From Adineta vaga (taxonomy: Eukaryota; Animalia; Rotifera): a stretch of DNA of 64,000 bases. Of this stretch, positions 1,519 to 32,146 are shown in pieces. Within the stretch, counting starts at the first letter, position 1. Each line of letters opens with the position of its first letter. The DNA lies in assembly GCA_021613535.1 (NCBI GenBank), contig CP075496.1:5146001-5210000 (forward strand), given 5' to 3'. The position numbers were made by a program, and so were the translations under genes. The notes beneath the pieces were generated by a model. It saw only the letters and a list, made by a program, of their open reading frames with translations, had not been told where the DNA came from and ran no database searches.

Positions 1519-2183
1519 TGATCGTTATTTGTTCTGTAATACTTCTCAAAATTAATAGACATTAAAATTTTTTCCGAACAGAAAAAGAAAGAAAAATTAT
1601 TTCAAATCAAACAAACAAAAATCTTATAGGCTCGACAAATACAAAGAAAATCAACAAAATGCAGCGCACAAATGGACGGAGCGAGAAGAACAAAGAGGAG
1701 GAAAAAAAACGCTTAAGTACAAAGATATGAGTAAATGCCCATATTCATGGCGCTATTACATACAATATACAAAAATCCGAAAAACATTTATACACACCAC
1801 AAGATTATTTAAGAAAAAGAAACAGGAGATCAAAGGTGAAGAGAAAAACAGAGCGGATAATCAAATAGAGGAAGCGTTCGTGATTCAACATGAGACTGAA
1901 TATATTTATCACTGTTGGTTAGTTAGAGAGGGAGAAAGAAGAAAAAGGAAGGAGAAAAAACTGATTATTGACGTCGAAAACGTTTGATATCATTATCCGA
2001 TGTTGAAAGATTTTCATCTATAGAACGTTTGAGTAATAATTGTTGTTTATCAACAAGATCAACAATAGTCAATGGTTGCTGTTTTTGATAGTTACTAAGA
2101 GCCGAAAGGACTTGTTGTTTTTCATTGGTTGATAATGTTGATGAAGTTGAAGACGAGTCATCATATGAATCACACGCTGATTG

Positions 2184-5100
2184 TCAAAGAGCTTTGCCTG
2201 GTCTGTGGAAGAAAGAAAAAAGAGAATAAAACGAAAATTAAAAGTGAATCTCTTCTTACAAAGCAAATGACATATTTTTAAAATCATGTTCAGGAAATCC
2301 AGTTAAAAATAATGTTGAACAACCACCATTTAGTTGTCCATTTGCTGTTGCAACAGCTACAGCTGAATTTGTTTGTTGCATTTGTGTCATCCCTGCTGTT
2401 GCTTGCATTGGATGACCCATACCCTAGAAATAGACAATAGATACATAGAAAAAGATGAAATCGATTAATAAAACAGATTGTGTAACAAGCAAATCTGTGC
2501 ATTTAGAATAAATAGAAGAAAACGGTATAAATATGCGCGCGCATGAACGAACCATTGAATTAAAGAAGAAACAAATTGTACGAAAAGTAAAGAAACAAAA
2601 GTTCTTTTTATATTGATCATTCACACGTATAAATATTAGGAAAGAAAAAAAAGAAAGTAGTGAGTACTAGATACTAATTCAAGGTCTTGTATGCTCCTGT
2701 GTCATATTATTGTTCAGTTTTGGTTTTATATGTATATTTTGTTTTTGATTGTTTGGTTTAATAGTGTATACGCGCGCGTGTACGTGAAAATGTTGTTTAA
2801 TTGGAGCTGTGTCGAATGTAGAGTAAGAAAAGTATATGAGAAAAAACAAATTGACACTAATCGTGCCAGTGGTCAGTGATCGAATGACTAGTAGTGGAAA
2901 GATAGATCTTTTTAATACTATTTTGATTTGGTTCTTTTTTTTTGCTTTTTTAAATGCTGTTTCTTTTATCGAACCATCGATACTTACATAACAGAACTCT
3001 GTCAGCTCATCAACTTAAATAATACATAGGAAGGAAATTGCTGTGGTTTTAATAGATATTTCGAAGATGAAAATGAGAATATACGTACCATTGGTGGACC
3101 ATGAAGAGCAGTATGTAATAAAGCTGGATGATGAAGACCAGCTGGACCTAAATCAAACGTTAATGGTTGACCCCAAGCTTCTGTTGGAAAGAAAGCGGCG
3201 CCAAGTTCTTCTACAGAAAACATCATGTCAATTATTTGAATCGATATTTGATTAAAATGGAAAACATACGTGGAATTTGAATAAATTGTTGTGTTGCAGC
3301 TGCTAATGAATTTTGTGTTGGATGTTTAGGTTTTTGAACTTTCGTATTCGATTTAGCAAATTCAAGACGAAGTGTTGCTGGTAAATCAGGATCAAAACGA
3401 ACACCCTATTTACAAAAAAATGAATCGTTATATAAAAACACAAATAGATAATCTTCATTCTTACAGTAAGGTCTTGTTTAGCTGTTTCAGCATCAACACG
3501 ACTGGCAAATGTAACAAAGCCAACAGGTGATAAATTTTTACCATTTTTATTGGTCACTTTCAATAGACTTCCTTCATAACCCTAGAAATAATAAAAAAAA
3601 AGAACTTTGATAACCATAACGGTCATACATGTCCAATTCAATCGTATGTTTGATCAGCCGATAGACAAGTCTCTAATGACTAACACTTCTCTTTCTGTCT
3701 GTCAATCAAATTCATGCAAACGATATGTTATAAAAGAGAGAGAAATAGGGAAAAAAGCAAAGTAAAATAGGATTAATGAAATAATTTCAGTGGAGATGTG
3801 ACATGAATATAACGCAATAAAAATACTAGATTATTTCTATCATTTACCTTGAATCCTCGAAATAGAAGATAGAGTTCGCGAGGTTTTGCATCCATCGGTA
3901 AACCAGAAACGAACAATGTTCGGACCTATAAAAATAAAATTATTGAAATATATCATATAAAACAAGACACAAATTTCTTCGAAAAAATTTTATATCTTTT
4001 TTACTAAGATGGTGAATAAAAGCATGGACACATACCGGTCGTCTATATACTAGATGTGCCTGATCGATATTGGATCGAAATGCTTTTTTGTTGGTGCTAG
4101 TATTCGTGCTAATAGTTGCACTTCCGTTGTCGACAGTTGTTTCATGTGTCATCTCAAGTTCTCCTATGAATTTTGTGTATGTATGTGATAGTCGAGGTGA
4201 TGATGAAAATCTGGTTATATTTTGATCAATAGCGGGAGAGAAACAAAGAATGATTGAAAAGAAAGCAAGTGAATGACACACTTGAAGTGAACAGTTCTTC
4301 CTAATTGAGAAATGAAGAGCAATGATGTGAAGGGAGACGACAAGTAACGACAATTAAGAGAGAGAAAGAAAATAAGAGACGAAAAAGAAAATGTTGTTTA
4401 TACAATTGGTGATGACGAGAACAAGAGATGTTGCGTGTGTTGATCTAACTTGCATATGCGCATCAGGTGTGTCGATATATATATATGTACGTGTGTGTGT
4501 GCTTATGCTTTTCAATTAGTTAATGAGAGAGATACATGAAAAAAAAGAAGAAGATAAAACAAGGGTTACAAGAATAGAATCTAACGGCTTCTGGTTACAC
4601 TCACCTCTGGGTTACACGACAATGATGATGATGAGGACGATGACATTGTCGTGCACATACCAACACACTTCAAAAGGCTTTTACGGTGAAAAGAAGAAAA
4701 ACAGACGATGATGACAATACCGGTAACGAAAAAGGTCTTTGTTCGAACTAATTGAATTTTATAGATCAATACTTGAAAAAGAATAGAGAAGCAATGCGTC
4801 TACCTTTGTTTGGCACTATTAAATAGACAGAAGAACGAAAAATAGAAGAAGACGAGTCAATAGAGACACACGAATGGATGAAATCATTTATGTTTCTTTT
4901 TGCTCTTTTCTTTTTCTTCTCTATTTGCTACTGTATTGAGACATTTTCAAAATTCCACTTCTCAAATCATAAAAAAAAACTAACACTATAATCAAAGGTT
5001 ACTTGGTATCCGTTTGATGTAGTGCCATACATCATGTAATACGAGAAGATCAAATCAAGTTTTCATTTTGTCTCTATGTGTTGAAACTGAAGGAAAGAAA

Positions 5101-9629: not shown

Positions 9630-12600
9630 AATCAATTTTCTATATGTATATATTTATTTATAATATCGGTCAATCTAAATAGAATGACATTCTGTTAGAA
9701 ATGTTTTATGAAATAAAATATACAGTTTCTTTTTTTTTTGTATGTATGGTTTATATTTTTCATCTGTGTATATGAGAAAGGGAAGAGAAAAAGTGATACA
9801 CGTCCGTTCAAACGACGGTCATGCACATAAAATTCTTCATCATCAGACAAAAGAGAAAGGGAGGGAAAGAGGTAAAAGAAGAGAATAGAAGAAAAGGTCG
9901 TTCTGCTAGCTCTACATGCTTATTCTCTAACTGTGCGACTAAAGAGAGAATTTAAAGGTGTTGTGCGCCGTCGCGCTCTCTCTCTTCCTCTCATTTGTGC
10001 TCGTTTCATCGTCGGGCCGGAGGGAGAGGTGCGAGTGTTTTCTTCTATCTCTCTTCGCATCTTCCATGAATCTTTTACTATTCTTTGTCGTTTACATTGA
10101 TCTATCCATCTATCTATTTTTCTATCGCTTCGTTTTTTTTCCTTTTTTCATATTTCTTCATCCTACATGCACGCATATAGATAAATACATAACATACTCA
10201 ACTATGTTTCAAATAAAAAAAAATATGTGTGAGAGTAAATGAAGCTAAAAGAAAAGAAATAGGAAAAGAAAGAAACTACATCAGTCGATAGAGTCAGTTT
10301 TTGACAAGTAAATTGTCTTTATCATTGCGCTAGTCGACGACTGGTGCACACGCACATATATTCTTATTGATGAGAAGCATAAGGAAAGCATTGGTAGAAG
10401 AGAGATAGAGAGAGAGAGAACGACAGTGAGAGGAAATCATCTTCTGCTCGTCGTTTACTTTGTCGACAACATCGATGTACTGCTGTTGCACTCTTTCTAA
10501 CCGATAATCATCGAACATGGCGTTTAGTCCAATTAGCCATTGGCATTTTCACAAAATTGCAATCCTACATAAGAAGACATCATAAGTTACCATTATCAAG
10601 CATGTACGCTTAGACCATGTTGAAGGTCGAGTAGCCTATGGTCTATCCGTATTTTGACATGATTAAAATCAAAACAAGAAAAAGAATAACAGAATAGAGA
10701 AGAAAAGAAAGTCGTGCATGAATATCCTCATTATCATAATTTCTTTCTTTGTTCGTACTTCTGCGAACTGAAGGATGCATGCATACACACATACATCGAT
10801 TTACGCTGTTACAAACACATGAAAAGAGGCTTGCAAGTCGAGAAGAATAAGAACAGCAGTAGTAGAAGAAGAAGAAGAAAAAGAAGACGAAGAAGGAAGA
10901 GTGCAAGTTTGATTGTTTGTTAATGTTTTTTCAGGACAAGGATTGTGGCGAGCTATTCTCTCGTTCTTCAACCTATTGATTATTATTTCTTTTTATACTA
11001 CTATATATTATTGCGATTGCTGTGACACATATCCCAACCATCCCTCTTATGTATGATTAGTGTCAATATCCCATCACTGTATATGACAGACGTCAGATCA
11101 TAAGAAGAGAAAACTCAGCAGTTCCACATATAATTGAAGACAAGGAAGAAGAAGAACAAGAAGAAGAAGAAGTAAAGATGTACTTCAAGTCATTAAAATA
11201 GATGGAATGATTAGTGAACAATACTAACAAAACTAATCAACGATTCATACAAGAAAAAATGATGATTTTTCTTTTGTTTGTTGATTTCTAAAGATTCTCA
11301 AGGAACAGAAAAGTTGTCTTTTGGCTTCGAGTTTATTCAATCATAATAATAATAATAATAATGCGTAAAGATTATAGGACAGAAAAACGATTTGAGTGTC
11401 AATATATCTATTGCAAGGAAATGACCTTTTCCAGATCTAGTGATGAAACATGGATGATAAACAAGCAGTAAAAGAATCTGAGTAAAAAAAAGAGCAAAAT
11501 GATCTTATTAGAATATGTTACATTGACGATTGGTTTACTTTCCTCAGTAAATAAATAATGTATCCGATTTTGATTTTTTTTCATTGCTAAATTTATTTTC
11601 TTACGCGTTAATGAGTGTGTAATCGTTGTCGAGTTTTGTTTCATCTTACCATTTGATGTTTCACGCTGTTCTTTCGGATGTTATTGTCTATTATGCAAGT
11701 TCATGAACATTTACCAAGTCTATTTTTACAGATGGAATGAATTATACAATGAGTAAAACGAAATTGAAAGGATGACTTTTTTTCAAATATTGAATAGAAG
11801 GGAAGCTCGTAAAAATTCATTCGATCATTGACCTTTTCATGTTTTATATTCAATATTGATTTTTGCCTGTAAAAATATGCTGAATCAGTTTTTTTTCACG
11901 AGTCATTATTAAAAGTCAATGGAATATAAAAATGTATAGCTGATTCAAATACAATTTTGCATATTGTTTATAGAACTTAAATGGAAGAAAAGAAAACTCA
12001 TTCGATGGAAATAATATTCAGATATTCGAAAAACACACATACATTTATTTATTGATTATTAGTGAAATTAACTTATAAGAAAAAAAAGCTCCAGGGAATT
12101 GATCGGAAAGGAGATTTTGGATGGAAATAGTAAAATATTATAAATATTCTTTTAAAGGAAAAGATATCCTTATTTAGTAGATAGTTACATCCGTAAATAC
12201 TTCAAGATTGAAGATGAGATTATAAAGTGGTAGGAATTGTTGATCGATTGTCTCGAAAAGATTTTCGTTCTATCACAAAGACGATAGATGTCACTAGAAG
12301 ACGATATAAATTATAATAAACGAATATATTCGAGAATCTTCCTGAAAAATAAATTTGATAATGCTTTTCATATTATTCTATGAAAAGATCTGATTTCTTT
12401 TTAAAGAAAACTATTAATTCTATAGTGAGATGTCGGTAGTATCAATGTTTGTCAACTCAGTGACATTTGCGAATGGTTGACTTTAATAGCTATTTTTCCT
12501 TTCCTTTTTTCCGATGCAGGGGATTTTATTTCATAAAAACGGAAAATACATATTAGTCATTATGCAACAAAACTATTTAATTTCAGAACAAAATTAGATT

Positions 12601-24984: not shown

Positions 24985-25653
24985 TCATGCATACACGATG
25001 AGTTGTAATATCTATATATTTATCATTCGATACAATTATAAATATATATGTAAATTGAATACAAACAATGTCATCGATACTTGATAAATTTTCATTTAAA
25101 TATTAGAAAAGCCATCTCTTACATAATCATTAAAGTCGTATGAAAGCCATTGTGACGCTGTTTCCTGATATTCAACTAGTTCTATTTGCAATTCAGTGAT
25201 TTTGTTTTCATTTCAAACAAGCACATCAATGTTAGTCAATGATCAACACAAAAAAAGAAGACATTACATTTATCAATAAGGACAAAAGAAAGAGAATTGA
25301 ACGAAATAAAGGTTTTCTCCCTATGATATCTTAGTACAAAACAACGAACGAACAAACAAAAAAGACAAGACATATATTAGTAAGGAAAAGAGTAGAAAGT
25401 TGTTGTGAATTGAAATATATTTTCAATCTTAGGTTGACATTAATAGAATAGAATCGAACCGTATCAAAGGTATTGACTAAAATACAAAACAAAACAAAGG
25501 ATAAGATGATTGATTTTGATTGTAGTTCGTTTCGTTTTTTGTTTGTAAATTATCATTGTAAAATCAATAGTCAGTTTTCGCAAGGTAAATAGTGAGAGAG
25601 AAAAAAACGAAGAAAATAAAAATAAAAAAATGGTAAAAAATACAGTCTGAGAT

Positions 25654-30074
<4,421 letters not shown>

Positions 30075-32146
30075 TGTGATTTCTCTGTGCTTTTAATTAA
30101 ACAATGATGCCAGTTGAAGAATACATCTAGAAATTTAAAAGAAAAACGAAAGAAACTTACTTCTAACCTTTTGAAGATAGTATATCAATCAATATAGATA
30201 CGAACGTATCTACTTGATGAAAACGAATATTAGTTAGATATTGAATGAACAAAAGAAGACAGGTGAAAAGACGTCTGATAGGCACATGCCTGTATATATA
30301 TATATGTATATTTATATGTTGTATTGTTTAGTAAAAGTGATTGAACATTATATTCATATGTGTTAATTGCCTTGTTTAATCGAGCGAATGAAGAAATGAT
30401 AGATAAACTTCTACTGATGTTCTTCTTTCCTTGGAAGAAAACAAAAAAGAAATTCTCTAAGCCTTTGCAAAATACGCGCAAAGGGGGCGTATGTATGTTA
30501 ACAAAATTAAATAGGTTAAGAAACAAATCGAAAAACGTACAAAGTTAATTTGATTGACCGGTAACAAACATAAGACAGTTGGTTTGTCGTTCTTCTCCTT
30601 TTTTTTCTTCTCTATCTGTGTCTTCTATCTAACGTATTCAATCAATGCCATAAATAGTACAATAATACGTACGATAAAGAAGTCGAATGATAAAACTAAC
30701 AAGTCTACCGATTGTATGGTGAAATCTCGTTATGATGATTGAAATAAAGAAGACGAGCGAGAGAACAAAAACGTATACGACAAGATAAACTAGATCGAAT
30801 TAGAAAAATAATATAAATAATAAAAGAACAGTAGTGTAACCTCTTTTGTCTGAGATTAAACAAGATAACAAAACAGTCGAATAGCTCGGATTTCTGTTCT
30901 TGTTGTCTTGTATATTTGTTATTGACGAATAACTCGTTAGAAATCGGATAGAAGATGCAAGAGAAAGAGTAACAAACATAACGACAACGCATCTTTCTTC
31001 CAAAGAGAAAAAAAAATATACGAAGAGAGAAGAATTAAGATGATCTTTGGTATTGCAGATGTTCGATCTGTATGTGTACTTAGACTAGTAAGACGCGTCG
31101 ACACTGCATAAAGCTTTCTTCCTTCGAACGGCAACGACAGACTTGTATACCTATGTGTCTAGATGTCTGCTCATATTCTAATCTTTTCCTTCTCTCGTCG
31201 CGTTGTTCTCTTTCTTTCTCGCTTTATTTTCTTACGGTTTCCTGTAGTACATATACACATATACATATACATGCAGCACAACATCATTAGAAGAATAAGA
31301 CCGATAAATAAAGAAATGAGAGAATGCAAAAAATAACTTGGGATATGTAAGACGCACCACAATGATAAATCGTCCATATAGACAGAGAGAGAGAGAGAGA
31401 GGAGGTAAATGATCTCTTGTTGAAGATTCTCTCTTTCCTCTCTTTTATTCGTTTGTGTCGATACAATCTCTTATCTTTTATCTGCTATTTTCCTTCCCTC
31501 CTTATTTTGTCTCTAACAAGACAAGTGATGATATAAAACAGGGAATCAATGATAAATTGATAAACTTAAAAGTTTTGTTTTCTTTTTCAAAGAAGAAAAT
31601 GTGAATATACTCAAAAAGAAATCAATCATTCAACAGAATAGTAAAAAACAAATTGAAAAGTCAGATAACTTTATCTATATACTTCTAGACAATAAGAAAA
31701 AGAAAAAGAAAAAGAATATGATATCTCATTCTCCCTCTTCAACAATAATCGACAAACAGTAGCAAGATGTTCTATCACCCACAAGATATAAGTCAGCTAG
31801 CTAATTTGTTTGTATTGTATATGTCTGTTGGGGCAGAGGTGGAGCCATTTTCTGATTGGTATTTCATAAAGTATTCTATCAAAAAAGAATTCTCTACTCA
31901 ACTCTTGTTCATGTTCATTTATTGATTTGAAAAAATAATTAAACAATACATGACACTTTGACATTCCAAGAAAACAATTTTTCCTTAGTCTAAAGTTAAA
32001 TTATTTCGAAAAAAATTTCATAGTGAAACAAGTGAATTCTCATTCTTTTTTCGAATTCGAATGTGTCAAATTTCTTGGTTTCTAAAACAAACATAAACTC
32101 TAAATAAAGATATTGATTTTTTTTTCACTTTAGTATAAGTCACTCA

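Follow-up and report, generated by a model that had tools for sequence, protein, structure and literature searches.

We analyzed a stretch of 64,000 nucleotides from the bdelloid rotifer Adineta vaga (NCBI GenBank assembly GCA_021613535.1, contig CP075496.1, positions 5,146,001 to 5,210,000), referred to below as the window. On its minus strand lies the gene of a protein with an RNA recognition motif (RRM), an orthologue of the RRM proteins RBPMS, MEC-8 and couch potato. The last exon of this gene encodes the C-terminus PGKAL, followed by a TGA stop codon, the hexanucleotide CAATCA and a tail of 72 open codons, an arrangement that the original prediction, made from the sequence of the window, had interpreted as a candidate for programmed stop-codon readthrough. 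Comparison with other bdelloids reveals that this tail evolves under protein-level selection, and that the stop codon and its context are conserved across Bdelloidea.

Gene structure and spliced transcripts

The family assignment was made on the orthologous protein P0015, whose RRM exons differ very little from those of the window. It contains a single RRM in its N-terminal half, which matches the Pfam family RRM_1 at 6.3e-11 and is nearest to the RRMs of the RBPMS/MEC-8 proteins, with matches to the PDB structures of MEC-8 (1e-37), RBPMS (1e-35) and RBPMS2 (1.2e-33). Full-length queries were in all cases database proteins; the exons and the tail of the window were searched separately, by reference, and the query P0007 consisted of residues 201–271 alone, i.e. 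the piece behind the stop codon.

The RNA evidence consists of assembled contigs from three runs (X1, X6 and X5) belonging to three studies; these contigs are spliced and therefore derived from RNA. A long N-terminal exon near 9650–9190 matches the N-terminus of a Rotaria orthologue. The RRM is encoded by three exons on the minus strand, each defined by stop-to-stop translation and by joints in the RNA contigs: positions 3847–3923, with the ribonucleoprotein (RNP)-type start of an RBPMS/MEC-8 RRM (joints 3580/3847 and 3923/4034), positions 3464–3580 (joints 3404/3464 and 3580/3847), and positions 3270–3404, which contain the end of the RRM and a linker (joints 3210/3270 and 3404/3464). They are followed by a coding exon at 3089–3210 (joints 2422/3088, cut +1, and 3210/3270) and by the penultimate coding exon at 2260–2423, defined by translation, joints and conservation in orthologues. 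An optional microexon of 27 nucleotides (3013–2987) between these two exons is seen in run X1 only, through the joints 2422/2987 and 3013/3089.

The penultimate exon encodes the end ...DFKNMSFA plus two bases of a split leucine codon, its 3' end on the minus strand reading ...TCA TTT GCT TT at position 2260. The last intron (2203–2259) is 57 nucleotides long and of the GT..AG type, with a donor ...TT/GTAAGA after 2260 and an acceptor ...CACAG/A at 2202, and is removed in the contigs of all three runs at the joint 2202/2260, with CT..AC ends on the plus strand. Splicing in phase 2 thus yields SFA-L-PGKAL, the first part of the last exon (2187–2202) encoding the canonical C-terminus; indeed, LPGKAL terminates nearly all orthologous database proteins. 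The TGA codon occupies positions 2184–2186, CAATCA positions 2178–2183, the open tail positions 1968–2183 and the second stop codon, TAA, positions 1965–1967, so that the splice, the stop context and the length of the open frame are exactly as originally described. In the spliced contigs from all three studies the junction 2260/2202 is followed by the unchanged TGA at 2186–2184. The last exon extends from 2202 down to at least 1508, and a contiguous RNA contig runs unbroken across 1508–2202; no joint inside the tail is reported in the RNA contigs, and the sole variants found there, at positions 2127 and 2160, are both synonymous changes of a third codon position. A second contig family, with the joint 2202/2263 and a loose end at 2167, corresponds to the identically spliced transcript of a duplicate gene.

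Conservation of the stop codon and the tail across Bdelloidea

The duplicate gene was found on contig C1 through a neighbouring exon (76% identity) and shows the same arrangement, with PGKAL, TGA CAA TCA and 58 open codons ending in KRLRQ and a stop codon. Used as a query against its own genome (100.8 Mb, six contigs), the 72-residue tail matched only itself. Further copies were collected by searching 1.84 billion protein representatives with this neighbouring exon and looking up the corresponding contigs, which led to 13 distinct copies including both ancient duplicates of this genome. The others come from the NCBI assembly GCA_905331535.1 (L007), a JGI metatranscript (L008), two divergent Logan contigs (L009/L010 and L011), Didymodactylos carnosus (L012/L013), the A and B duplicates of Rotaria magnacalcarata (L014 and L017/L018), Adineta steineri (L015), Adineta ricciae (L016) and two spliced Logan transcripts (L019 and L020); five of the 13 are environmental or Logan contigs. 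The last intron of the Didymodactylos carnosus copy measures approximately 1.9 kb. Outside bdelloids no counterpart was found of the region that follows the RRM, of the PGKAL end or of the tail, within the word-sharing limits of the search.

All 13 copies read ...PGK(A/S)L TGA CAA TC(A/C), followed by an open tail of 36–105 codons. The stop codon is always TGA and the five bases CAATC behind it are invariant, so that the leaky context is retained throughout. PGKAL, the TGA and the tail also occur in spliced mRNA contigs that derive from other bdelloids (L008, L019 and L020); together with the contigs of the three studies, these place the stop codon and the unbroken tail within mature mRNA, as far as assembled contigs represent it. 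Stop-to-stop intervals of at least 72 codons make up only 1.8% of all such intervals in the window (30.6% G+C), real exons included; since intervals of this length are rare and the frame is open in all 13 copies, the openness of the tail exceeds what chance would produce.

The three 3' untranslated region (3'UTR) islands described at the end of this paper are themselves conserved and non-coding, and nucleotide conservation alone was therefore not counted as proof of coding; only frame-specific signals were retained. Over the tail, the 773 codons of the 13 copies include no in-frame stop codon, whereas stop codons number 40 and 145 in the two remaining frames. In nucleotide-level pairwise alignments built without regard to frame, every one of the 35 gaps in the tail has a length divisible by three, which holds for 20 of the 85 gaps (24%) in the 3'UTR behind the second stop codon. 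For the analysis of substitutions the tail was divided into a proximal part, the 30 codons between the stop codon and a candidate alternative acceptor discussed below, and a distal part comprising the rest. Among six A-type copies the ratio of nonsynonymous to synonymous substitution rates (dN/dS) is 0.30 for the proximal and 0.26 for the distal part, and approximately 0.28 for the whole tail. The synonymous rate dS of the tail (about 0.36) is similar to that of the upstream exon, which served as a control for dS only (0.36), its variable part having been compared ungapped. Parsimony events at the three codon positions number 44/29/53 in the proximal and 66/42/94 in the distal part, the third-position excess of the latter having a P value of 7e-5.

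The peptide motifs of the tail are maintained through synonymous change. Conservation is strongest in the first six residues, in a VLS(A/T)L block, in LKR(S/T)xDE and in the terminal KR(L/F/V)R(R)Q. Independent in-frame deletions have cut the middle of the tail in L011, in L009 and in the B-type copies; despite these deletions the first codons (QSACDS) remain in frame with the KR...KRLRQ end. Two other ways of accounting for an open frame at this place were considered and rejected: the tail of the window contains no ATG and no methionine is conserved among the copies, which argues against independent initiation, and the frames of the opposite strand contain 98, 21 and 49 stop codons over the tail span, summed over the 13 copies, which argues against a gene on that strand.

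The tail is disordered in character, acidic and rich in serine and glutamine; no Pfam domain was found in it, the matches being sub-threshold and attributable to chance. Its end is formed by a bipartite basic motif, KR-x13-KRFRR in the window (1971–2030), made up of the conserved LKR(S/T)xDE and KR(L/F/V)R(R)Q segments. The pattern KR-x(9-20)-K[KR]x[KR] is present at the end of all 13 tails, against an expectation of 0.01 from shuffled sequences, with 9–20 residues between the two basic clusters and 13 in the window. In a classical bipartite nuclear localization signal (NLS), a linker of approximately 10–12 residues connects the basic clusters KR and K(K/R)x(K/R), longer linkers being tolerable. 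The motif is a candidate NLS, which would import part of the RNA-binding protein into the nucleus.

Most of what the original prediction expected from such a comparison is borne out. The TGA-CAR-YYA arrangement and the synonymous-biased conservation downstream of it recur in all 13 copies, both ancient duplicates among them, with CAATCC in two, and the NLS-like basic end that had been noticed in the window is common to all tails. The expectation of conservation free of indels has to be modified: the tail does contain indels, every one of which is in frame.

Probable readthrough and its alternatives

An alternative 3' splice site would dispense with readthrough altogether. Splicing from the donor at 2260 to the AG at 2096–2095, with an exon start at 2094, would skip the TGA and the first 30 codons of the tail and give ...SFA-F-NYQKQQ...KRFRRQ. 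This acceptor, whose kind had been anticipated as a possible refutation of readthrough, does exist: the AG is compatible in phase, lies behind a pyrimidine-rich stretch, is retained at the homologous position in the A-type copies of Adineta and Rotaria, and is used in NCBI models from Rotaria sordida, R. magnacalcarata, Adineta steineri and the assembly GCA_905331535.1 (P0001, P0008–P0011). These models, however, are predicted ones. For the same genes of the same species there are other models that end at PGKAL (P0017–P0019), and in Didymodactylos (P0029) and Rotaria socialis (P0028) the predictors bypass the stop codon elsewhere, which suggests that the tail attracts them by its coding potential. 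All RNA-derived sequences, i.e. the RNA contigs, the JGI metatranscripts and the Logan transcripts, use the proximal acceptor and retain the TGA. Moreover, seven of the 13 copies, among them the B-type copies, Didymodactylos, L009 and L011, lack this AG and still have open tails. Splicing to 2094 also leaves unexplained why the 30 codons upstream of the acceptor contain no stop codons, have indels in multiples of three only and show a dN/dS of 0.30. Since these 30 codons between the stop codon and the acceptor carry the coding signature, the existence of the AG does not overturn readthrough, and we consider it very improbable that alternative splicing replaces it. That such splicing co-exists with readthrough as a minor second route in the A-type copies is less implausible, albeit still unlikely. 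Two further splicing variants were examined and rejected. A NAGNAG-like acceptor (TCAG/CG) just behind the stop codon does not fit the phase of the single donor observed, leads to an immediate stop codon and is absent from four copies; skipping of the penultimate exon enters other frames, which are quickly closed.

The remaining alternatives leave splicing as observed and differ in what becomes of the UGA. A conserved in-frame UGA with a conserved open frame behind it is also the hallmark of selenoprotein genes, in which UGA is decoded as selenocysteine (Sec) by means of a selenocysteine insertion sequence (SECIS) in the 3'UTR. A tRNA-Sec gene is present in this genome (contig C2, 2054217–2054302, L021; 66.7 bits, above the Rfam cut-off), so that selenoproteins are probably encoded, and most copies have a cysteine four residues behind the UGA. 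On the other hand, no SECIS match was obtained at E values up to 10 in positions 1–2600 of the window or in four orthologous transcripts or loci, a search whose sensitivity is without a positive control, as the Rfam model SECIS_1 matched nothing anywhere in the whole genome. The conserved islands of the 3'UTR have no AUGA...GA core kept across copies, the cysteine is replaced by tyrosine or serine in three copies, and RRM proteins perform no redox chemistry, so that selenocysteine appears extremely improbable. Editing of UGA to UGG (Trp) by ADAR in part of the mRNAs, with the tail translated from the edited messages, would likewise keep a TGA in the DNA ahead of a coding tail, and a minority of edited reads could escape assembly into contigs. 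Against it, TGA is found in all RNA-derived contigs (the three A-type runs, the transcript of the duplicate, L008, L019 and L020), neither around nor behind the stop codon is there a double-stranded structure that is conserved or significant, G is the 5' neighbour that ADAR favours least, and the invariant CAATC would be left without explanation; we regard editing as very improbable. As for the tail being a conserved untranslated element of the 3'UTR with an incidentally open frame, the strongly conserved non-coding islands of this 3'UTR make such an element conceivable in principle. It is contradicted by the absence of in-frame stop codons, the 35 of 35 gaps in multiples of three, the dN/dS of about 0.28, the third-position bias and the preservation of peptide motifs through synonymous change, which reduce its probability to a minimum.

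Readthrough is favoured because it accounts for everything observed, the invariance of the bases 3' of the stop codon included. We therefore consider it highly probable that the gene undergoes programmed UGA readthrough in a CARYYA context of the tobamovirus type, in agreement with the original prediction, whose interpretation gains support from the conservation of the downstream frame and the confirmation of the TGA by RNA contigs. UGA followed by C is the weakest terminator. Most ribosomes would terminate at the UGA (2186–2184) and release the protein ending in PGKAL; a fraction of them, owing to poor termination at UGA-CAAUCA, would decode the UGA by a near-cognate tRNA and continue through 72 codons to the UAA at 1967–1965. 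The longer isoform would thereby gain an acidic, serine- and glutamine-rich tail ending in KR-x13-KRFRR, and this basic motif may act as a nuclear import signal, shifting part of the protein to the nucleus.

A stimulatory RNA fold 3' of the stop codon was sought in addition and is not significant (z = +1.05, +1.33, +0.68 and –1.61). The consensus prediction by alifold contains a single invariant hairpin of five base pairs, with no covariation, an energy of –1.55 kcal/mol and the TGA outside it. This hairpin (2180–2166, AAUCA, a loop of five nucleotides, and UGAUU) starts two bases behind the stop codon, its stem is essentially invariant in the 13 copies and its loop varies; it would sit inside the ribosome when the stop codon occupies the A site. 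Since no significant fold is found behind the stop codon, we take the linear context as the probable signal for readthrough.

Several points weigh against this interpretation. The sixth base of the hexanucleotide is A, giving the full CARYYA fit, in 11 of the 13 copies; it is C (CAATCC) in the other two. The effect of CARYYA is transferred here by analogy from plants and human cells. The evidence for translation of the tail, which we infer, is comparative. The pairwise statistics reuse related sequences, the third-position excess in the proximal part is modest (binomial P = 0.025, 29 aligned codons), and the proximal dN/dS of the B-type copies amounts to 0.59, calculated from few codons. Contigs drop rare forms, so that a minor spliced or edited mRNA may exist, and the import function is proposed from the pattern of the bipartite motif.

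Stop-codon readthrough in animal genes is already well known. In human cells CARYYA behind UGA leads to approximately 15% readthrough, and all six bases matter (Loughran et al. 2014, PMC4132726). Like the tobamovirus signal (UAG-CAAUUA in tobacco mosaic virus), the CAAUCA found here directly 3' of the stop codon fits CAR-YYA; the differences are a UGA instead of a UAG, a cellular animal gene instead of a plant virus, and C as the sixth base in two of the 13 copies. Readthrough genes of Drosophila have reportedly been predicted by comparative means by Jungreis et al. in 2011. The present case resembles them in being an animal gene with a conserved leaky stop codon and a tail carrying a coding signature, and differs from them in phylum, in the gene concerned, in resting on comparative evidence alone and in its CARYYA-type 3' context. 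Readthrough tails of Drosophila with predicted NLSs moved a cytosolic reporter to the nucleus in three of four tests (Dunn et al. 2013, PMC3840789); the gene cpo (couch potato) is not mentioned in the main text of that paper. Vertebrate genes with UGA-CUAG readthrough include OPRL1, OPRK1, AQP4 and MAPK10 (PMC4132726). The bdelloid gene shares with them an invariant UGA and invariant 3' bases across a deep phylogeny and paralogues, as well as a conservation of the tail concentrated near the C-terminus, whereas its motif is CAAUCA and its tail is longer and varies in length by in-frame indels. Our literature search retrieved no paper on readthrough in rotifers, and none linking RBPMS or cpo with translational readthrough.

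Cryptic peroxisomal signals exposed by readthrough or splicing occur in fungal glycolytic enzymes and in mammalian LDHB and MDH1, and in fungi the two processes do the same targeting job in different species. Likewise, the bdelloid gene would produce a minor extended isoform with a short C-terminal targeting signal, and the A-type copies may share the duality of splicing and readthrough; here, by contrast, the signal looks nuclear. One may go further and suppose that readthrough is a regulated switch, older than the bdelloid genome duplication, by which a portion of this RBPMS-type regulator of splicing and mRNA is directed to the nucleus, and that in Adineta and Rotaria the A-type copies have gained the alternative 3' splice site, which would lead to the same nuclear tail by another path, in analogy with fungal peroxisomal targeting; we offer this as a tentative and rather unlikely scenario. 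RBPMS-type proteins have roles in splicing, in the nucleus, as well as in mRNA control, in the cytoplasm. If real, a tail added by readthrough and equipped with an import-like signal would be a simple means of dividing one gene product between the two compartments. It would also imply that a CARYYA context of the tobamovirus type is in use in a cellular animal gene, and that this use has persisted throughout an entire class of rotifers and through a genome duplication. Rotifers would then join the animals suitable for the study of functional readthrough.

Database annotations, 3'UTR and neighbouring genes

The putative longer isoform is missing or mis-modelled in the bdelloid annotations examined, as predictors let the gene end at the TGA or bridge it by invented introns. 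In seven NCBI models (P0001, P0008–P0011, P0028 and P0029, from loci including L007, L012, L014 and L015) the TGA is stepped over by predicted introns at three different places. These stop-skipping annotations are inconsistent with sister assemblies that end at PGKAL and are probably wrong. In the JGI metatranscriptome proteins P0002, P0007 and P0012 the gene caller wrote a tryptophan at the TGA (L008, 612–614) and again at the second TGA, so that the databases contain proteins which continue past the stop codon; this is a calling artefact, through which the tail came to light in natural mRNAs.

The 3'UTR behind the tail occupies at least positions 1508–1964, its minimum extent being given by the contiguous RNA contig 1508–2202. 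It contains three islands (1917–1874, 1774–1756 and 1682–1651, minus strand) that are conserved at the nucleotide level between the two ancient duplicates as well as across Adineta, Rotaria and divergent bdelloids, and are separated by indels that are not multiples of three; they are likely regulatory sites. A convergent neighbouring gene (approximately 700–1470) ends a few hundred bases behind the 3'UTR, and in the orthologous loci a minus-strand gene occupies the same place. Further away, stop-to-stop translation of positions 25600–30100 of the minus strand reveals exons of an alpha-actinin-like gene, with calponin-homology, spectrin-repeat and EF-hand peptides.

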